IMG/VR virus record: IMGVR_UViG_3300023049_000005
Span: 62,001-126,000 of that record
Strand: one strand, 5' to 3'
Length of the DNA stretch: 64,000 nucleotides
How positions within the stretch are numbered: the stretch's first letter is position 1; each line of letters starts with the position of its first letter. The notes under the pieces are model-generated. The model did not search any database and had not been told where the DNA came from. It worked only from the letters and a program-made list of their open reading frames with translations. A program made the position numbers and the translations under genes. Below are positions 3,341 to 44,533 of the stretch, piece by piece.

Positions 3341-4990
3341 ATGAAATTATTAGATAAAGACCTCCAAGATTATAAGCTTCGTGACCTCCAAGAAGAGTGT
3401 TTAGATTTTATGTTCGATACACTGAACCATGATGAAACAAAAAAATTCTTTCTGTTAGACCTACCTACGGGTACGGGTAAATCAATATTAGCATTAAAGT
3501 TTATCCAACAATATTTAAAAATGGATAGTGATTCTAGATTTGATTTATTAACAGAATCTAAGATATTACAAAACCAATACGCAGAGGAATTTAATTCTAT
3601 TTCCAATCTTTGGGGAAGGAATACCTACCAATGTTCACAATTCAATTGTTCTTGTGAAGAAGGGAAAGAATTTCAGGTGATTTCTAAAAGCAAATGCGAG
3701 AATTGTCCATATGATAATTCGAGAGAAGCTTTTATGAGTGGTAGGATATCATTGACTAATTTTCATATGTTTACATTGATGTCAATGAATAATCTTTTGG
3801 ATAGAAGAGAAAGTAATATTCTTATAGTAGATGAAGCACACCAACTCGAAACGGTTGTGTCAGACTTCATTTCAGTAACTATTTCACATAATATATTAAA
3901 CGGTGTTTTCGAAGATCCTGATAAGATCCTTAATAGTATGAAAGATTTAGTTACGATAGACGACTTTATAGAATATTGTAAAAATGTTCTATTGAGAAAG
4001 GTTCAGACTAAAATGGGGCAATTGGAATTAAGTCTTAAAAAATCAGACAAAAGAGTATTACAAAGAGAACTTAACATTAATGAGATACTAGGAGAAGACG
4101 GCAACCAAGAAGTCGAAACAAGTAAGACTATCAATAAACTCAGATCTATTGAATCTAAATTATCTAACCTTATAGAAGAATATAACGACAACGGAGATAA
4201 TTGGGTATTACAAACTGAATATGATGAAAAGAATAGAAGGAAGATAGTTATCCAACCTATATGGGCATATCCATTCTTCGATAAATATATTTGGAAGAAG
4301 TATGATAAGGTTATCTTAATGAGTGGTACTATACTTGATAAAAAAATGTTTTGTTATATAAATGGTATCAATGAAAATTTTGCAGCGTATTATAGGATCA
4401 ATTCGCCCTTTCTAGTAAAAAACAGACCTATATATTATATGCCAATTGGTAAAATGACATATAAAGAAAAACAAGATACTTTTAAGAAATATGTACCTGT
4501 CTTGAAAAAAATACTAAGTAAGTATAAAAACAAGAAGGGTATCATACATACAGTTACGTTCGAAATACAAAATTGGGTAGTTGATGCGCTGAAATCACCA
4601 AGGCTTCTACCACATGATTCTTCACAGAAATCTAAGAAATATGCTTTGAAGCAACACTATACATCTAACCAAGCAACAGTATTAGTAAGTCCAAGTATGT
4701 CAACGGGTATTGATTTAAAGGATTCGAGAGCTAGATTTCAAGTATGTATGAAAGTACCATACCCATCATTAGCAGACTTCAAGAATAAGAAGAGAAATGA
4801 AACAAATCCCAATTGGTATCAATGGCAAACCATATGTAAATTTATTCAAATGTATGGTAGAGCGGTTAGAAACGAAAATGATAAATCAGATTTTATCATA
4901 TTGGATCAGTCATTTTCTAATATATTATCTAGGGGATCACATTTTATCCCGCAATGGATACAAGATGCAATAAAAACAGTTAAACTATGA
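3341..4990 (+). CDS. DinG/XPD-family SF2 helicase
   Basis: PTGTGKS Walker A, DEAH, Cys cluster (Fe-S-like), SGT, GID, QMYGRAVR. Confidence 0.9.
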   Translation: MKLLDKDLQDYKLRDLQEECLDFMFDTLNHDETKKFFLLDLPTGTGKSILALKFIQQYLKMDSDSRFDLLTESKILQNQYAEEFNSISNLWGRNTYQCSQFNCSCEEGKEFQVISKSKCENCPYDNSREAFMSGRISLTNFHMFTLMSMNNLLDRRESNILIVDEAHQLETVVSDFISVTISHNILNGVFEDPDKILNSMKDLVTIDDFIEYCKNVLLRKVQTKMGQLELSLKKSDKRVLQRELNINEILGEDGNQEVETSKTINKLRSIESKLSNLIEEYNDNGDNWVLQTEYDEKNRRKIVIQPIWAYPFFDKYIWKKYDKVILMSGTILDKKMFCYINGINENFAAYYRINSPFLVKNRPIYYMPIGKMTYKEKQDTFKKYVPVLKKILSKYKNKKGIIHTVTFEIQNWVVDALKSPRLLPHDSSQKSKKYALKQHYTSNQATVLVSPSMSTGIDLKDSRARFQVCMKVPYPSLADFKNKKRNETNPNWYQWQTICKFIQMYGRAVRNENDKSDFIILDQSFSNILSRGSHFIPQWIQDAIKTVKL

Positions 4991-5258: not shown

Positions 5259-5729
5259 ATGAACATTTTAAAGTTTTTCAGGTGGCAAGGATTTAAGAAA
5301 GTTCCTAAGAAATACTTTACACAAGAATCGTTCGCTTATAGTGTTGAACACAGGGAATGTTGGAGTGAATATAACGGACTTCGAGAAGATCTTAGTAAAA
5401 TTTGGTTCGAAATAAAAGAAGTTAGTAAACGTGAAGCAGAAGGATATAGGAGAACAGCAAGACTCTTGTTTGATCCTGTTAGGCACAATTGTCTTAGTTT
5501 ACAACTAAACGAAAAGGAAATAGTATATATATTCTGTAATAATCAAATGTCATATTCTATATTAATGATAAATAACGAAGATGGGATTTTCACAAGGGCG
5601 TATGAATTTATGTTAGAAGATCACGGAACAGAAAACTCATTTAACAAAAATTTAAAATCTGTAATTGGTACAACAAGATACAGAGATTATGTATTAACTC
5701 AAATTTTTAAAAAAGAAGAAAAGGTATGA
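5259..5729 (+). CDS. hypothetical protein, C-terminal motif family
   Basis: RDYVLTQIF near C-terminus. Confidence 0.6.
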   Translation: MNILKFFRWQGFKKVPKKYFTQESFAYSVEHRECWSEYNGLREDLSKIWFEIKEVSKREAEGYRRTARLLFDPVRHNCLSLQLNEKEIVYIFCNNQMSYSILMINNEDGIFTRAYEFMLEDHGTENSFNKNLKSVIGTTRYRDYVLTQIFKKEEKV

Positions 5730-6649
5730 ACACAAAGGTATTTAGTTTAAAGAATTCAAGAGAGATCGGAAAGAAGATCACAAACATCGATTTGATGACA
5801 ACAAAACAATTCTCTGATGGAGAAATAAAAGTCGAAATCGAAGAAAGCGTTAGAAGTAATAGGGTGTTTGTTATTGGGTCACTAACTACCTCTGATGATA
5901 TTATCGAATTAATGATGGTGGGTGATGCTTTAAGAAGGGCAAGCGCAAAAGAAATTATTGCAGTCGTTCCTTACTTAGCCTATATGCGTCAGGATAGAAA
6001 GGATAAACCTAGAACAGCAATCGGTTCTAAAGTGATGGCAAATATGATCGAGATCTATTATGATCAAATCATCACTATGGATTTACACTCAACACAAATC
6101 GAAGGATTCTTTAATATACCTGTTACGCATATTAATTGTGCTACAATATTTGAAATCTATATTAGAAAAAACTTTGACCTTAGTAACGTGATCATTGTTT
6201 CTCCTGATGTTGGGGGGGCAAAAAGAGCAAAGAAGTTGAGTTCAAAAATGGGGCTTCCATTGGCTATTATTAACAAAGAGAGAAAGATAGCTAATGAAAT
6301 ATCTTCTATGGAATTAATAGGTGATGTTAATAGTAAAGATGTGATCATATTAGATGATATGGTTGATACTGCAGGTTCTTTATGTAAAGCAAGCGATTTG
6401 TTAATTGAAAACGGTGCGAATAAGGTTTGGGGTTGTGCAACACATGGTGTTTTATCAGGGGAAGCACATAATAGAATATTAAATTCGAGTTTAGAGAAAT
6501 TAATTTGCACTGATACTATTAAGATAAAAGATAATGAAAAGATAGAGATACTAAGCTGTTCAGACCTAATTAAGAAAACTATTGAAACTATTGAGAGTGG
6601 AAATAGTATAAATAGTTTAGTAAATGATGAAACTTTTCTCGTTAATTAG
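5726..6649 (+). CDS. prs: ribose-phosphate pyrophosphokinase
   Basis: FSDGE, PYLAYMRQDR, DLHS.QI.GFF, VSPDVGG, DDMVDTAGS. Confidence 0.97.
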   Translation: MNTKVFSLKNSREIGKKITNIDLMTTKQFSDGEIKVEIEESVRSNRVFVIGSLTTSDDIIELMMVGDALRRASAKEIIAVVPYLAYMRQDRKDKPRTAIGSKVMANMIEIYYDQIITMDLHSTQIEGFFNIPVTHINCATIFEIYIRKNFDLSNVIIVSPDVGGAKRAKKLSSKMGLPLAIINKERKIANEISSMELIGDVNSKDVIILDDMVDTAGSLCKASDLLIENGANKVWGCATHGVLSGEAHNRILNSSLEKLICTDTIKIKDNEKIEILSCSDLIKKTIETIESGNSINSLVNDETFLVN

Positions 6650-6722: not shown

Positions 6723-7583
6723 ATGAATAAATCCAACGAAAGTTATCTATTTAACATAGAACAAAAAGCAAGAATGTTCAAAGAAAAGACAAAAAAGGAT
6801 TTTTCGGATTTCTACGAAAAATATTTCCCTAAATTAGTTTTCTACAACAACAACATTTTAAAAGACGAAGAAGCAGCAAAAGACATCGCAACAGATGTGA
6901 TGCTTAAATCTCTTTATAAAATCGATGATTATGATCCTAACAAAGCAAGGTTTTCTACATGGTTGTTTACCATCTCAAAAAACGAGTGTTTTCAATACAA
7001 AAAGAATCAAGCTGATAAATTAATATCAGTTGATAAATTTGTTGATGATGATGGAACTACTATTAAAGACTTCTTAAATGATTCATCTCTTGAAGACGAA
7101 GAAATATTCCAATCGAAAGAATTAGACGATAAGAAAGGGATGATTCTAAAGGAAAGAATAAAACAATTAAAAGAACCATATAGAGAAGTTATCTCTTTAA
7201 GAGAGATCGAACTTAGATCTTATAGAGATATTACTATTATCATGAGAGAAGAAAATGAAATCGAAATCGATGATTCTTATTTCATTACTGATCATATATT
7301 ACATATGGTAGACCCTGAGAAGAAAGAAGATAATGAGTTAATCAAATTTCATACTATCGATAGTGTATTGGATAAATACGGAGATCCTGTTGAATTCACT
7401 ATATTAGATATAGATAAAGATGGTCTTATATCTTGTATAAAATTACCTAAGGGGGAATATACTATCATAGGTGAAACTCCATATAACATTAGTACTATAA
7501 AATCTCAAATAAGAAACGGAAGGAAACTTTTACAGAACGCTGTAAAGGAAGAATTTGAAATCTTGGATAAAACATTTCAATAA
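6723..7583 (+). CDS. ECF-type sigma-70 factor with an insertion in region 4
   Basis: region 2 (AKDIATD..L; FSTWLFTISKN) and region 4 (SYRDI...STIKSQIRNGR). Confidence 0.85.
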   Translation: MNKSNESYLFNIEQKARMFKEKTKKDFSDFYEKYFPKLVFYNNNILKDEEAAKDIATDVMLKSLYKIDDYDPNKARFSTWLFTISKNECFQYKKNQADKLISVDKFVDDDGTTIKDFLNDSSLEDEEIFQSKELDDKKGMILKERIKQLKEPYREVISLREIELRSYRDITIIMREENEIEIDDSYFITDHILHMVDPEKKEDNELIKFHTIDSVLDKYGDPVEFTILDIDKDGLISCIKLPKGEYTIIGETPYNISTIKSQIRNGRKLLQNAVKEEFEILDKTFQ

Positions 7584-7618: not shown

Positions 7619-7651
7619 AAAAAGACCCTACATTTCGATGTGGGGTCTTTT
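7619..7651 (+). terminator. intrinsic terminator
   Basis: AAAAGACCCTACAT-TTCG-ATGTGGGGTCTTTT. Confidence 0.8.
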
Positions 7652-9768: not shown

Positions 9769-10503
9769 CTATTTTTTTGCTTTAATAATAGTATCGATAA
9801 ACGAATCTTTCATTTCCTCTCTTTTCTTTATGATCCTAAAGTCAAGGAATATATAAAACAGTAATAGTAATACTATCATAAAATAAGCAATTAAGTATGT
9901 TTTAAAATAAATATTCTGTGTTTGTATCTCCTCTTCTATTATAACAACTTGTTTATTGATATTGGATTCTATTTGGTTTAGTAATAAATCAATGTTTTCC
10001 ACAATAGTTATATTAACATACGGTGAACCTATAATATATTGATTAGTATATCCGTCATACTCTTTTAAGTGTAGTATATTAGTTAGGTGAATTTCCTTTC
10101 TTTTTAATAGATAATTAATGTTTTTAAGAATACTTCGATCTAAGCCCTTTGATATTTCAAAATCTTTTAGTAGGGATTTCCTGTACTTAGATACAACATA
10201 TCTATAATTTGAGACTAATAATCTTTTGTTATTATATAACCCACCATCTCCGTTAGTATCATTATATAATATAGTTTGTTCTTTGGTTAAAAATAAAATA
10301 GATCTACTTTTAATTTCACTCATTTCACTATTAAGCCTGATTATTTCTTTTTGTTGAGCCTCAATTTGATTAACACTTCTATCATATATCGTATTCAACA
10401 CTAAGGTTGACGTAGAAAATACTACTAATAATATAGCTATTTTAACACTTAAAAGGTTCTTTACCCTAAGGTAATTCCTTATCTTTTTTATCCATTTTAT
10501 CAT
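9769..10503 (-). CDS. two-TM membrane protein with a helical extracytoplasmic domain
   Basis: hydrophobic helices near both ends flanking a helical region. Confidence 0.6.
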   Translation of the reverse strand: MIKWIKKIRNYLRVKNLLSVKIAILLVVFSTSTLVLNTIYDRSVNQIEAQQKEIIRLNSEMSEIKSRSILFLTKEQTILYNDTNGDGGLYNNKRLLVSNYRYVVSKYRKSLLKDFEISKGLDRSILKNINYLLKRKEIHLTNILHLKEYDGYTNQYIIGSPYVNITIVENIDLLLNQIESNINKQVVIIEEEIQTQNIYFKTYLIAYFMIVLLLLFYIFLDFRIIKKREEMKDSFIDTIIKAKK

Positions 10504-10530
10504 ATATTATATATTAAATTTGAAAAAAAA

Positions 10531-10561
10531 TTTGGTAATTAAATAAACTTTATTATATTTG
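10531..10561 (+). promoter_or_regulatory. Bacteroidota housekeeping-sigma promoter for the tRNA operon
   Basis: TTTG (10531-34), 19-nt spacer, TATATTTG (10554-61); a late-type AATATATA also lies at 10587-94. Confidence 0.8.
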
Positions 10562-10599
10562 CACTCTATAAGGAAAAGAAAACTTTAATATATAAGAAA

Positions 10600-10656
10600 A
10601 TGGTATTAGTATTTAAACATAAATTTTTTCATAACCACTGCAAAAGTAGAGGGTGA
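10600..10656 (+). CDS. attenuator leader peptide 1 (His/Lys/Phe-rich) MVLVFKHKFFHNHCKSRG
   Basis: 18 codons with 3 His, 3 Lys, 3 Phe; 3' end carries AAGTAGAGG, complementary to the terminator 5' arm. Confidence 0.8.
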   Translation: MVLVFKHKFFHNHCKSRG

Positions 10657-10689
10657 GATTTTTATGTCTAAAAATTAAACCAAATGATT

Positions 10690-10723
10690 AAAACCTCTAC
10701 TTGAATAAAGTAGAGGTTTTTTT
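10690..10723 (+). terminator. attenuator terminator upstream of the tRNA-His pair
   Basis: AAAACCTCTACTT-GAATA-AAGTAGAGGTTTTTTT. Confidence 0.85.
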
Positions 10724-10730
10724 GTTATAT

Positions 10731-10803
10731 GGTGTTCGTAGCTCAGGGGAAGAGCGTCTGTTTGTGACACAGAAGGTCGGGATCTCGGAATTCCTCGAAC
10801 ACC
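10731..10803 (+). tRNA. tRNA-His(GTG) with atypical T-arm
   Basis: G-1:C73, stem TCTGT/ACAGA, GTG at 10764-66; T-loop CTCGGAA. Confidence 0.75.
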
Positions 10804-10813
10804 CAAAATATAT

Positions 10814-10906
10814 GGTGATTGTAGCTGAATGGTATGTAGTATCTGTAAGAGAACAAGCACTTGGTTGTGACCCAAGAGGATGTCGGTTCGAGTCCGATCT
10901 TTCACC
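10814..10906 (+). tRNA. tRNA-His(GTG) with ~20-nt D-loop insertion
   Basis: G-1:C73, stem CTTGG/CCAAG, GTG at 10867-69, canonical TTCGAGT T-loop. Confidence 0.75.
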
Positions 10907-10923
10907 CAAAATATAAATGAAAA

Positions 10924-11139
10924 ATGGAATATTGTTATATATGCTTTAATGGAACAGAAGAAGAAATGGTGTGTGATACATGTGAAGAACATTATTGCGA
11001 AGATTGTTCGTATATCTTTTCATTACACTACCAATTTCAAAGAAGTAGGTGCTATGAGTGTGCTGATCAGAGTAGAGAATATCCATTGGATAAAGCTGAA
11101 ATAAGAGAAAGAAAAATTAATATGTTATTAGAAGTATGA
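10924..11139 (+). CDS. small Cys-rich zinc-finger protein, C-terminal motif family
   Basis: four CxxC pairs; ends RERKINMLLEV; its stop overlaps the ATG of leader 2 (ATGA). Confidence 0.75.
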   Translation: MEYCYICFNGTEEEMVCDTCEEHYCEDCSYIFSLHYQFQRSRCYECADQSREYPLDKAEIRERKINMLLEV

Positions 11140-11213
11140 GAACAGTAAGTAAAAATATCAAAGGTTTTAAAAAGTTTTTTAAGAAGAACTTTATTAGGGA
11201 CAATACATCCTGA
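11136..11213 (+). CDS. attenuator leader peptide 2 (Lys/Phe-rich) MRTVSKNIKGFKKFFKKNFIRDNTS
   Basis: 25 codons with 6 Lys (3 AAA, 3 AAG) and 4 Phe; contains TATTAGGG, complementary to the terminator 5' arm. Confidence 0.8.
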   Translation: MRTVSKNIKGFKKFFKKNFIRDNTS

Positions 11214-11236
11214 TCGGAAATGATTAATAAATGTAT

Positions 11237-11270
11237 AAGCCCTAATAGAATATCTGTTAGGGCTTTTTTT
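11237..11270 (+). terminator. attenuator terminator upstream of the Lys/Phe tRNA array
   Basis: AAGCCCTAATAGA-ATA-TCTGTTAGGGCTTTTTTT. Confidence 0.85.
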
Positions 11271-11274
11271 ATAT

Positions 11275-11348
11275 CCCCTCTTAACTCAGTTGGCTAGAGT
11301 ACCGTGCTTTTAACACGGGAGTCGCAAGTTCGAGCCTTGTAGGGGGGA
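11275..11348 (+). tRNA. tRNA-Lys(TTT)
   Basis: cloverleaf; CCGTG-CTTTTAA-CACGG. Confidence 0.92.
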
Positions 11349-11356
11349 CAAAATAT

Positions 11357-11444
11357 GCAGGTGTATCCGTAGTTGGTCGAACGGTCCCGCCTTTTAAGCG
11401 GATGAGTGAAAGCTCCAACGTGGGTTCGAATCCCACCACCTGCA
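11357..11444 (+). tRNA. tRNA with Lys(TTT) anticodon and long class-II-type variable arm
   Basis: GCAGGTG/CACCTGC acceptor, CCGC-CTTTTAA-GCGG, extra arm GAGT-GAAA-GCTC, A73. Confidence 0.8.
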
Positions 11445-11449
11445 CAAAC

Positions 11450-11522
11450 GGTGATATAGCTCAGTTGGTAGAGCAGTGGATTGAAGATCCACGTGTCGGG
11501 GGTTCAAGTCCCTCTATCACCA
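11450..11522 (+). tRNA. tRNA-Phe(GAA)
   Basis: cloverleaf; GTGGA-TTGAAGA-TCCAC. Confidence 0.93.
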
Positions 11523-11530
11523 CAACATAT

Positions 11531-11604
11531 TCCCTCGTAGCTCAGTTGGTTAGAGCTACCGACTTTTAATCGGTAAGTCACAGGTTCGAGTCCTGTCGGG
11601 GGAA
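11531..11604 (+). tRNA. tRNA-Lys(TTT)
   Basis: cloverleaf; ACCGA-CTTTTAA-TCGGT. Confidence 0.93.
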
Positions 11605-11609
11605 CATAT

Positions 11610-11681
11610 GGAAACTTAGCTGAGACGGTTTAGCGGAAGGTTGAAGACCTTCAGAGGTGGGTTCGATCCCCACAGTTTCCA
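11610..11681 (+). tRNA. tRNA-Phe(GAA)
   Basis: cloverleaf; GAAGG-TTGAAGA-CCTTC. Confidence 0.9.
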
Positions 11682-11687
11682 CAATAT

Positions 11688-11761
11688 TCCTTCGTAGCTC
11701 AGTTGGCTAGAGTAACTGACTCTTAATCAGTGGGTCACAGGTTCGAGTCCTGTCGGGGGAA
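11688..11761 (+). tRNA. tRNA-Lys(CTT)
   Basis: cloverleaf; ACTGA-CTCTTAA-TCAGT. Confidence 0.93.
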
Positions 11762-11762
11762 C

Positions 11763-11853: not shown

Positions 11854-12978
11854 TCAAATAATTATTATACCGTCTCTATTAGGCGAAACGCTTAAGATTT
11901 TTATTCTCTGATGGAGATTATCTTGTATATAATTAATATATTGTCTAAAGTTAGGATCTTCTAAATCTGCTTTAACCCATGATTTGAAATCATAATATTT
12001 ACCACCACAATAAATTTTAAGTGGGGTTATATTTTCTAGTACATCAGATTTAGTCATAATTAAATCAGTTACTCCATTTAATTCTATACTCTCTTTTAAT
12101 TCATCTAAGTTTAACCAACCACATCTTCTTGGTCTGCCTGTTGTAGCACCAAACTCCCCACCTGCCTTCTGTATTCTTTCGCCAAGTTGATTTTTTAATT
12201 CAGTTTTCATATCACCATTACCAACTCGTGTTAAATATGATTTAAACACACCATATACTTTACCAACACTCTGAGGTGGCATTGCCAACCCTACACATGC
12301 ACCTGAACTTACTGTATTTGATGAAGTAACATATGGATAAGATCCATGATCAATATCTAACATAGTACCTTGTGCGCCCTCTGCTAGTATTTCACCTTCT
12401 TGGTTTCTTAACCAATTAGACTTAACGATATTTAATGTTTTAAGAAATTCCATACCTACTCTAAAATGTTCGAACTCAAGGAATTCATCTTGGTCTTTAC
12501 CCATTAAATCAACAGGTTCTATATTTAGATCGTTTCCAATAAAATCCACAACTCTATAACCTTCTCGGTATATTTTATCTCGATAACAAGGTCCGATCCC
12601 CTTTGGGGTACTACCTATGGTTGACACATTCTCTTTATCTTCCATAAAATGGAAAGGAGTCACTACGTGTGCGTTTTCTGAAATGAAAATTCTCTCTCTT
12701 GCGTTGGGTATATGTTCTTCAACTTCTTTTATTTCTTGCATCAATTGAAATGGGTCGATAACCATACCATTACCCAAAAAATTCTTTGTGTGTTCATGTA
12801 CTATACCACTTGGTATTAAGTGTAAAACTATTTTTATTCCATTATGATATATCGTATGTCCTGCGTTTGCACCGCCCTGATATCTAGCAACAATATCATA
12901 TTTTTTAGACAACATATCTGTTATCTTTCCTTTTCCTTCGTCTCCAAATTGAAGCCCTACTAATACGTCCATAAACAA
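11854..12978 (-). CDS. purA: adenylosuccinate synthetase
   Basis: GLQFGDEGKGK, GGANAGHT, EGAQG, GATTGRPRRCGW. Confidence 0.97.
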   Translation of the reverse strand: MFMDVLVGLQFGDEGKGKITDMLSKKYDIVARYQGGANAGHTIYHNGIKIVLHLIPSGIVHEHTKNFLGNGMVIDPFQLMQEIKEVEEHIPNARERIFISENAHVVTPFHFMEDKENVSTIGSTPKGIGPCYRDKIYREGYRVVDFIGNDLNIEPVDLMGKDQDEFLEFEHFRVGMEFLKTLNIVKSNWLRNQEGEILAEGAQGTMLDIDHGSYPYVTSSNTVSSGACVGLAMPPQSVGKVYGVFKSYLTRVGNGDMKTELKNQLGERIQKAGGEFGATTGRPRRCGWLNLDELKESIELNGVTDLIMTKSDVLENITPLKIYCGGKYYDFKSWVKADLEDPNFRQYINYIQDNLHQRIKILSVSPNRDGIIII

Positions 12979-17143: not shown

Positions 17144-18075
17144 GACTTACTATTTGATTTTCTGCTTTTAACATATTTTTCAATACTCTGCTTGATTTGA
17201 TCTTCTAATATTTTAGGATCTTCCATTAACTTATTAAAGATATATCTACTATAATATTCAACAGGAGATTCATCGAAATCAAAGTTATCTTCCAAGAACT
17301 TAAATACTGTCTTATCGGGTATCTTTTCGTCAATTTTAAGATCTACTTTAAGGCTATGTGTTTTCTTAGCATTATCATATACTTTATTGCCTTTCTGAAC
17401 TTCTTGTTGTTCCCTATCTAATCTTTGTTGTTCCCTATCTAATCTTTGTTGTTCAATTCTAGCATTTACATCTACTGCTTTAGGTTTTTCTTTTTTATCA
17501 TATGCTAGATCTTCCAATGTAGCATCCGCACTCAGTTTTTCTTTTCCTTTAGATGGGTTTGGTGTTTGTTTCCCATACTTATTAAGAAGCTCTTGTTCTT
17601 GCTCATCAGGTGTTAACTGTCTAGGTTGATGTTGTTCAACAACACTTGTGTTACCAACATTAGGTTGGCGTTTTTCTACAACATTACCACTCATCTTTAT
17701 ATGTGATTGTTGACCATGTAGACCTAAATTAACAGGTGATAAATTAACATCTCCATCATCCCCAATAGAAATAGATCTATCATTAGTACTAGGGTTTGGG
17801 TTAGCGTTATTATTAACACTATTGTTGATACCTTCTAGCATTTGCTCGTATCTATTCTTAGGTGGATTTGGATCAGGGTTATGTCTTTCGACTACTGATT
17901 GGCTTTCGTTTATACTTTGGTTGTTATTGGCTTCACTAATTTGTTTATAAAAACTAGAATCAGATAATCTCTCCACGGCTACTCGTTCACCGTTGTTTAA
18001 TGTAGCGATATTGCTCTCTACGTTTTCAACTTTGACTACCCTTCCTTTACTATCTTCAAATTTTAATCCCTTCAT
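17140..18075 (-). CDS. hypothetical protein with disordered Asn/Gln-rich centre
   Basis: long ORF; 21-bp tandem duplication encoding EQQRLDR x2. Confidence 0.65.
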   Translation of the reverse strand: MKGLKFEDSKGRVVKVENVESNIATLNNGERVAVERLSDSSFYKQISEANNNQSINESQSVVERHNPDPNPPKNRYEQMLEGINNSVNNNANPNPSTNDRSISIGDDGDVNLSPVNLGLHGQQSHIKMSGNVVEKRQPNVGNTSVVEQHQPRQLTPDEQEQELLNKYGKQTPNPSKGKEKLSADATLEDLAYDKKEKPKAVDVNARIEQQRLDREQQRLDREQQEVQKGNKVYDNAKKTHSLKVDLKIDEKIPDKTVFKFLEDNFDFDESPVEYYSRYIFNKLMEDPKILEDQIKQSIEKYVKSRKSNSKS

Positions 18076-43498: not shown

Positions 43499-43533
43499 AA
43501 AAAAAGACCCAAACAAGGTTTAGGTCTTTTTTT
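43499..43533 (-). terminator. terminator downstream of tmRNA
   Basis: AAAAAAAGACCCAAAC-AAG-GTTTAGGTCTTTTTTT hairpin. Confidence 0.7.
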
Positions 43534-43540
43534 AATGGAG

Positions 43541-43913
43541 TGGAGATGGAGGGAGTCGAACCCTCGTCACAGACACTTTAGTATAATACTTTCTACAAGT
43601 TTAGTTTACATAGTTAGGGTAAACACCTTAGTTAAACTTATTTTTTTAAACTGTTCTAATCAAACCAAAATTCAGTCCTTCTTATAATAACTGCTAAGAA
43701 GTTTGCAGCTTGGAGTTTTGTCGGTTGCTTAGACAGCTAATACAAGTTCTCCGTCTTGTACAGATTCCGTAGAATCTAATGCGTCTAAAACGTCAATCTT
43801 TTCAGATACTACGTTTAATTGTTTATCTACTAATTTATTAATCGGACACTTTAATAGACAATCCGATACTTGCTTACACTATCTGAAAATGACGCTCTAA
43901 TCCAGTCACCCCC
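43541..43913 (-). ncRNA. ssrA: tmRNA
   Basis: 5' GGGGGTGACTGGATT; 3' GACGAGGGTTCGACTCCCTCCATCTCCA; G3.U70 pair; internal tag frame 43812-43729. Confidence 0.9.
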
Positions 43914-43978
43914 ATTTAAGTTTCATTATTTTATATATAAAAATATTAGAATAAGTTTTAGCAAAATTAAATAAAAGA

Positions 43979-44533
43979 ATGGATAATAACAAATTAATAG
44001 TATTAGATATAGACGAAACTCTATTTCATTGTGAATATGAATTAGAGGATTTTGACTATGTGTTCGAAGAAGATAATATTATGTACTATACTAAGAAAAG
44101 ACCTTATCTAGAAGAGTTTCTGAATTATATTAAAGGAAATTTCAAGTATGGTATCTATACTACAGCAGGTGAAGATTATACTAAAATACACATGAAAAAG
44201 CTGAATTTAGACCCATTATTCCTCCTATCTTATAAAAATTGTACCCAAAAAAGGAAATTTAGTATGGGTGAGCAGAATGGATATACTTCTGAATGGTACT
44301 CATTAAAGAAACTTGATAAAGTAAAAAGGTATAGTGATAAATCTAATATGATTGCTATCGATGATAAATGGGAAAGTTTTGCTAATGATTACGGAAACTT
44401 AATTAAAGTGAATCCTTTTACGGGTGATATAAATGATACTACCTTAAAGAAACTTATGAAATATTTAGAAGATCTTAAAGGTGTGAAAAATATTAGAAAG
44501 GTTGAGAAACGGGGTTGGATGAGTAAATATTAA
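43979..44533 (+). CDS. HAD-family FCP1/NIF-like phosphatase
   Basis: VLDIDETL, KRPYLEEFL, IYTTA, AIDD. Confidence 0.88.
   Translation: MDNNKLIVLDIDETLFHCEYELEDFDYVFEEDNIMYYTKKRPYLEEFLNYIKGNFKYGIYTTAGEDYTKIHMKKLNLDPLFLLSYKNCTQKRKFSMGEQNGYTSEWYSLKKLDKVKRYSDKSNMIAIDDKWESFANDYGNLIKVNPFTGDINDTTLKKLMKYLEDLKGVKNIRKVEKRGWMSKY

Follow-up and report, generated by a model that had tools for sequence, protein, structure and literature searches.

In a jumbo phage, two tandem clusters of tRNA genes are preceded by elements that are best explained as ribosome-mediated transcription attenuators of the trp/his leader-peptide type, where a short reading frame rich in codons read by the downstream tRNAs is placed in front of an intrinsic terminator. 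We favour this explanation with good, though not full, confidence, as it rests on sequence analysis and folding models alone, and translation of the reading frames, its coupling to transcription, termination efficiency and regulation itself are inferred. Such a device would allow the phage to make its own tRNAs only when ribosomes run short of them, a use of classical attenuation for which we found no description, whether in phages or in cells, in the literature searched. About 18 homologous cassettes occur in other phage contigs, and their sensor codons track the identity of the tRNAs that follow.

The analysed stretch of 64,000 nt (hereafter the window) corresponds to positions 62001-126000 of the 270,756-bp viral contig IMGVR_UViG_3300023049_000005 (Ga0136601_1000001). 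It has about 29% G+C and encodes a sigma factor, a PRPP synthetase, a helicase, an adenylosuccinate synthetase, a tmRNA and eight tRNA or tRNA-like genes. The elements of the two window units described below are on the + strand, and positions are those of the window.

Sequence elements of the first unit

The initial annotation described a His-rich leader ORF and an antiterminator directly upstream of two tRNA-His genes, and every statement it made about the sequence was confirmed. The ORF at 10600-10656 reads MVLVFKHKFFHNHCKSRG, with His at codons 7 (CAT), 11 (CAT) and 13 (CAC). The 9-mer AAGTAGAGG at 10644-10652 is an exact copy of the 3' arm of a terminator (10708-10716) and is complementary to CCTCTACTT at 10694-10702; the copy in fact extends over 10 nt (AAAGTAGAGG, 10643-52 and 10707-16). 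The terminator (10690-10723) consists of AAAACCTCTACTT, the loop GAATA and AAGTAGAGGTTTT, with a hairpin of -15.7 to -17.7 kcal/mol followed by 7 T (10717-10723), and it is not a terminator on the - strand, which has no T tract there. Only seven bases (GTTATAT) separate the T tract from G-1 of the first tRNA-like gene, which leaves no room for a promoter in between.

A random origin of the repeat is improbable, as none of 300 dinucleotide shuffles of the upstream 112 nt contained a copy of 9 nt or more, and only 0.2-0.3% of shuffles reached the duplex energy of -13.7 kcal/mol (-12.9 to -13.7 kcal/mol for 10644-10652 with 10694-10702). The coding content is also unusual, with 3/17 His codons against a background of 0.016 (P = 0.0022) and 9/17 K/H/F codons, all cognate codons being in frame; 1.8% of random ORFs of 14-22 aa in the window have 3 or more His. 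The sensor is not purely histidine: codons 5-13 (10612-10638) read FKHKFFHNH, a K/H/F sensor that is homologous to the K/H/F/W leaders of relatives.

The two genes downstream are better described as tRNA-His-like. They are found only by the Rfam tRNA model (10732-10803 at 44.9 bits and 10815-10906 at 51.6 bits, against a gathering score of 29), while ARAGORN calls neither. Both possess a GUG anticodon, G-1 (at 10731 and 10814, so that the genes span 10731-10803 and 10814-10906) and C73, but the first has a non-canonical T arm and loop, and the second carries a 21-nt insertion in the D loop and two U-U mismatches in the acceptor stem.

The leader ORF is preceded by the signals of a real gene. 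A promoter of the Bacteroidota primary-sigma type, with TTTG at -33 (10531-34), a 19-nt spacer and TATATTTG at -7 (10554-61), is predicted at 10531-10561. With the 4-5 nt spacing reported for Flavobacterium johnsoniae (PMC6847099), transcription would start at about 10566-67, giving an A-rich leader of 33 nt, which is the average leader length reported in that study, with A at -3. A scan with the sigma-70 consensus gave no enrichment in the window (25 found against 23.9 expected), and neither was the Bacteroidota pattern significantly enriched (6 against 2.9); the promoter assignment rests on its conservation across the cassettes. The motif TTTAATATATA at 10584-10594 ends 5 nt before the ATG. 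There are 16 exact copies of this motif in the window, nine of which are followed after exactly 4 nt by the ATG of an ORF of 117-897 aa, so that the small ORF carries the normal gene-start context of the phage.

The RNA 10565-10730 folds far better than shuffled sequences (z = -6.07, with 0/200 shuffles folding as well). A long imperfect hairpin of 82 nt (10601-10682), not described in the initial annotation, encloses the sensor codons and sequesters the 9-mer, and represents an anti-antiterminator. Its AAACAUA:UAUGU(U)U helix recurs in relatives.

A second unit 400 nt downstream

The same architecture is found again 400 nt downstream, in a second unit that the initial annotation did not report. 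A 71-aa ORF with four CxxC motifs (10924-11139) has a TGA stop that overlaps the ATG of a second leader ORF (ATGA) and thus probably delivers ribosomes to that leader. Leader ORF 2 (11136-11213) reads MRTVSKNIKGFKKFFKKNFIRDNTS, and 10 of its 24 codons are Lys or Phe (P = 0.0008; 1.2% of random ORFs of 20-30 aa have 10 or more K+F). Within it, TTTATTAGGG (11190-11199) can pair with CCCTAATAGA (11240-11249) as a 10-bp antiterminator, which was matched by 0-0.4% of shuffles, and the alternative fold has -19.6 kcal/mol against -18.3 kcal/mol for the terminator. The latter (11237-11272) consists of AAGCCCTAATAGA, ATA and TCTGTTAGGGCTT plus TTTTTTT (hairpin energies of the two units are -15.7 and -17.8 kcal/mol), and ends about 3-9 nt before the first gene of a tRNA cluster (11275-11762), Lys(UUU)-Lys(UUU, 89 nt)-Phe(GAA)-Lys(UUU)-Phe(GAA)-Lys(CUU).

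As an internal control, every hairpin followed by a T tract was listed on both strands of the window, and the 112 nt upstream of each were examined for a complement to the 5' arm. Of 16 terminator orientations, only the two in front of tRNAs stand out (-13.7 and -12.0 kcal/mol; at most 0.3% of shuffles), while thirteen others are at background and one matches through an SD-like TCTCCTT.

Folding in the presence of a ribosome

At equilibrium the full-length leaders always fold into the terminator, with or without ribosome masks, and the model therefore depends on kinetics, as is the case for classical attenuators. We thus folded transcripts cut before the terminator 3' arm. In the first unit, the 5' arm is free without a ribosome (P paired = 0.02), the 9-mer being locked in the 82-nt hairpin, which predicts termination. 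A ribosome stalled with His codon 7 or 11 in the A site frees the 9-mer, which then pairs with exactly 10694-10702 (P = 0.66 and 0.59), whereas pairing is much lower for a stall at codon 13 (0.22) and does not involve the 9-mer when the ribosome is at the stop codon. In the second unit, stalls at codons 9-14 result in a probability of 0.76, and codon 17 or later, or the stop, in at most 0.12. This is the behaviour proposed in the initial annotation, where a ribosome reaching the stop would cover the 9-mer and one stalled around codons 5-11 would leave it free, with the addition of an anti-antiterminator, and it resembles that of trp/his attenuators.

We therefore envisage that, if Lys-, His- and Phe-tRNAs are plentiful, the ribosome runs to the stop codon (10654-56) and covers AAGUAGAGG (10644-52), so that the terminator forms and RNA polymerase stops 7 nt before the tRNA-His-like genes. 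If no ribosome loads, the long hairpin holds the 9-mer and termination follows as well. If the ribosome stalls at the sensor codons (F5-H13, and especially at His 7 and 11), the hairpin is opened while the 9-mer stays uncovered, pairs with CCUCUACUU (10694-10702) and pre-empts the terminator, so that polymerase reads into the tRNA-His-like genes. In the second unit, where ribosomes arrive from the overlapping CxxC ORF, the same decision would be taken on Lys and Phe codons. The net effect would be a negative feedback where phage tRNAs are made when decoding of their own codons is slow. A weakness is that the first unit has only three, non-consecutive His codons and that the function of the atypical tRNA-His-like genes is unproven.

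Homologous cassettes in other phages

Searches with the flanking 244-aa protein, the purA-like gene and the sigma factor returned, in the collections searched, only the same contig and a near-identical one of 39 kb, which shows no difference in unit 1 and a single SNP (11201 C>A, D>E) in leader 2. Orthologue-level covariation for unit 1 could therefore not be assessed. Relatives found through the CxxC ORF mostly lack tRNAs at that site, but one of them (L016, extended as L022) carries 30 tRNAs and three cassettes with the same layout. These are MRTINLNMINVNNTLN...DLTTL before tRNA-Asn x2, MRTINKHKHFSKSSKWF...DLTTL before Lys-His-Phe-Lys-Trp-Trp-Lys-His-Phe-Lys, and MRTILNILVSSSRSSSGHVIRLCL before Arg(ACG)-Ser(UGA), the last using the otherwise rare cognate codons TCG, TCA and CGC.

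Further loci, from many independent contigs, were reached through homing-endonuclease-like ORFs inside tRNA arrays and through two DNA patterns taken from the conserved leader start. They include QAVAGQGQAG before Val-Gly-Ala (locus L065), NPQPQVVVDQDQDPD before Asp-Pro (L079, L095, L134), QPQVQPQQPDQDTD before a Pro-like tRNA followed by Asp-Asp-Gln-Lys (L055), a Ser-rich leader before tRNA-Ser (L047), FKHTSFSKSFKWFSHKF before Lys-Trp-Phe-His-Trp-Lys (L093), FNKHSRSSKKSFWFK before Lys-Phe-His-Trp-Arg-Ser (L106) and SSKSSSRSSK before Arg (L124). The correspondence between sensor and tRNAs is illustrated by INLNMINVNNTLN before Asn-Asn, NKHKHFSKSSKWF before Lys-His-Phe-Lys-Trp-Trp-..., SSSRSSS (TCG TCA AGT CGC TCG) before Arg(ACG)-Ser(UGA), NPQPQ..DQDQDPD before Asp-Pro, and KHSRSSKKSFWFK before Lys-Phe-His-Trp-Arg-Ser. 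A scan of bacterial genomes with the leader N-terminal DNA pattern gave only chance hits with no tRNAs.

An alignment of eight units shows the shared promoter, the invariant AATATATA, the ATG with an M(R/K)T(I/V)..N start, TTAAACATA, and the terminator with its T tract, followed by tRNAs. Cognate codons are enriched against phage codon usage in each of five units tested (P = 0.0022, 0.0008, 0.02, 0.0006 and 0.033) and lie in the ORF frame (60/232, against 15 and 18 per 232 in the other frames). When the assignment of tRNA clusters to leaders was permuted over 9 units, 0/100,000 permutations reached the observed score.

All added cassettes have terminators of -13 to -22 kcal/mol and, in most, a significant complement to the 5' arm lies in the last third of the ORF, although three of 18 (L055, L049 and L094) show no significant antiterminator complement. 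As a MAFFT alignment of the K/H/F/W leaders did not keep the helices in register, covariation was tested with an 18 x 18 matrix of leader against terminator arm. The leader's own arm is the best partner in 9 of 18 cases and among the top three in 13, and the diagonal sum is -186.7 kcal/mol against a permutation minimum of -164.6 (0/100,000), which represents covariation of the antiterminator with the terminator. Examples are CCGAAC with GTTCGG, CCGAGC with GCTCGG, CCAAGT with ACTTGG, and CCTCTACTT with AAGTAGAGG. One case does not fit well, as in the Asn unit region 2, the 5' strand of the antiterminator, lies 21 nt before the stop codon and is not covered by a ribosome at the stop. The device is also not universal: across 166 tRNA clusters sampled from diverse phages, the enrichment is only modest (4 against 0.85 expected at P < 1e-3), so that it is restricted to one cassette family, and cognate leaders as a general rule for phage tRNA clusters have only weak support.

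Alternative explanations

Of several other possible explanations, the least unlikely, though still improbable, is that the leader is translated and senses cognate tRNA supply, but acts by translation-dependent processing or stability of the tRNA precursor, or by Rho-type termination. A unit at locus L032 (MYYYDYYYSG, 40 nt before tRNA-Tyr) indeed has a hairpin without a T tract, and three cassettes lack a clear antiterminator, but the 18 cassettes of the family and both window units have canonical GC-rich hairpins with T tracts, with which the upstream complement co-varies. It is very unlikely that we are dealing with an ordinary terminator, insulator or small structured RNA that happens to be located upstream of the tRNAs. 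AT-rich DNA yields many short ORFs, and the fold of 10565-10730 resembles an sRNA (a hairpin plus a terminator), but coincidence is difficult to reconcile with the absence of the 9-mer copy among the shuffles, the gene-start motif, the confinement of cognate codons to the ORF frame, and the recurrence of the architecture with matching sensors and covariation.

A T-box-like riboswitch, where the leader RNA binds tRNA directly through the cognate triplets, would fit the output logic and the match of triplets to anticodons, but is likewise very unlikely. No T-box hit was obtained in 10400-11300 even at E <= 10, the leader is only about 130 nt, cognate triplets sit in the frame of an ATG-to-stop ORF 3-4 times more often than in the other frames, and sensors with up to six specificities do not fit one specifier. 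We also consider it very unlikely that the ORFs encode functional micro-proteins linked to tRNAs by genomic position only, although their ends are conserved (M(R/K)T(I/V)LNI and LCL or DLTTL) and similar N-termini occur on small ORFs not followed by tRNAs (L060, L064). The conserved codons coincide with the strands of an RNA helix (TTAAACATA with TGTGTTTA or TATGT), which argues that RNA structure rather than peptide function is conserved, and the middle of the peptide is hypervariable and tracks the tRNA identity.

Relation to known systems

The leader-peptide attenuators of amino-acid operons (hisL/his operon, trpL, pheL, thrL, leuL, ilvL) share with the phage elements a short ORF with regulatory codons, mutually exclusive 1:2, 2:3 and 3:4 helices, an intrinsic terminator, and a decision set by ribosome position (PMC1183508). 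They differ in that the genes regulated here are tRNAs rather than biosynthetic enzymes, that the phage elements occur with Bacteroidota-type signals, and that their sensors are often multi-amino-acid and swapped between paralogous cassettes. No Rfam family reaches its threshold on either leader: His_leader (RF00514) scores 34.1 bits (gathering score 49) at 11155-11272 and Phe_leader (RF01859) 17.4 bits (gathering score 55) at 10607-10723. The pheST (pheM leader) attenuator of E. coli phenylalanyl-tRNA synthetase appears to apply the principle to a component of the translation apparatus, sensing the charged cognate tRNA, but would control a synthetase rather than tRNA genes, and is chromosomal, single-amino-acid and gammaproteobacterial. 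T-box riboswitches also cause antitermination in response to a specific tRNA, with identity set by triplets in the leader, but bind uncharged tRNA directly, have no ORF, are about 200-300 nt long with conserved motifs, and control synthetase, biosynthesis or transport genes. In mycobacteria, polycysteine leaderless short ORFs with runs of one codon act as amino-acid-responsive attenuators (bioRxiv 10.1101/834739), but regulate protein-coding operons, and the organisms, signals and proposed mechanism differ.

Phage tRNA arrays are known to compensate for depleted or insufficient host tRNAs, an example being T5 tRNA-Lys/Thr/Asn against PARIS AriB (PMC12409363), and in the papers we found no demand-sensing control of such arrays was described. 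If the model is right, phage tRNA genes in this group are not simply constitutive codon supplements but are under closed-loop control by translational demand, which bears on the question of whether phages carry tRNAs for codon-usage compensation or for escape from tRNA-targeting defences. It would also be an example of attenuation in hosts with Bacteroidota-type signals, which lack Shine-Dalgarno initiation. The cassettes form a comparative series of about 18 natural variants (Asn; Arg/Ser; Ala/Gly/Val/Gln; Asp/Pro/Gln; Lys/His/Phe/Trp), and their compact parts could serve as sensors of specific charged-tRNA pools. A more speculative possibility, which we regard as rather unlikely although it is not excluded, is that they are a modular, portable promoter-leader-terminator unit, a tRNA thermostat whose sensor codons are rewritten to match whichever tRNAs are placed behind it, and which also responds when the host cuts or depletes specific tRNAs (Lys, Asn, His and others) as an anti-phage defence. 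The unit would then be an inducible counter-defence and a natural in vivo reporter of the charged-tRNA pool.

Unit 1 of the window aligns with the K/H/F/W leaders, and in this phage that cluster appears to have been split into His (unit 1) and Lys/Phe (unit 2). Because unit 1 senses K, H and F while unit 2 senses only K and F, we infer that the two act in tandem, such that His shortage should open only unit 1, giving tRNA-His, while Lys or Phe shortage should open both units, giving all eight tRNAs.

tRNA variants and interspersed genes

"Long" tRNA variants are found next to a normal-length tRNA with the same anticodon. In the window these are a tRNA-His-like gene of 92 nt with a 21-nt D-loop insertion (10814-10906) and a tRNA-Lys(UUU) of 89 nt carrying an extra-arm hairpin, as in class II tRNAs (11357-11445), while others, including one at 10771-10859 of L022 (an extended contig of a relative that was reached through the CxxC ORF), bring the set to Asn (89 nt against 75), Pro (90 against 76) and Ile (86 against 74). 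In L022, HNH/HTH homing-endonuclease-like ORFs (11013-11609, 12045-12731 and 17318-17962) are interspersed in the tRNA arrays and end directly at the next tRNA, and their relatives mark tRNA arrays in many other phages (31 loci).

The ORF at 10924-11139 of the window encodes a 71-aa protein with four CxxC motifs that is conserved at 50-60% identity in many freshwater phage contigs (e.g. L005/L006, 6001-6220), where it follows a DNA-methyltransferase-like gene with no tRNAs nearby. In the window, by contrast, it is located between the two tRNA units and is probably translationally coupled to leader 2. The only difference between the window and the near-identical contig across 10500-11800 is a C>A exchange at position 11201 (D>E in leader 2), which falls in an unpaired stretch of the antiterminator fold.

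Leader-like ORFs

Small ORFs with the same MRTILNIL or MKTVLNIL start and the same DNA motif were also encountered in the loci L060 and L064 (rc positions 1138 and 348), but these are not followed by a terminator or tRNAs, and the leader start is therefore not exclusive to tRNA cassettes. In a 413-kb phage contig (L032, 2399-2470), the ORF MYYYDYYYSG* lies 40 nt upstream of tRNA-Tyr, with a P value of about 1e-6 for the enrichment of Tyr. As it has a hairpin but no T tract, it may represent a different kind of cognate leader.

Gene-start motif and other genes in the window

The motif TTTAATATATA occurs at 16 exact sites in the window (e.g. at 7649, 13037, 20228, 45208 and 51932 on the + strand and at 10518, 30216, 45186 and 49217 on the - strand), and 9 of the 16 copies are followed after exactly 4 nt by the ATG of real genes. 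There are 55 matches within one mismatch, while 25 would be expected. The motif is either a phage-specific gene-start or translation signal, or a promoter for near-leaderless transcripts.

Auxiliary and expression genes in the window code for a PRPP synthetase (5726-6649), a sigma-70-family factor (6723-7583), an adenylosuccinate synthetase (11854-12978, - strand) and a DEAD_2/ResIII helicase (3341-4990). The phage also encodes a tmRNA (43538-43913, - strand; Rfam 59.3 bits; tag ...VQDGELVLAV*), which is preceded by a TTTG-N-TAnnTTTG promoter match (43962-43993, - strand) and followed by a terminator (43503-43529).
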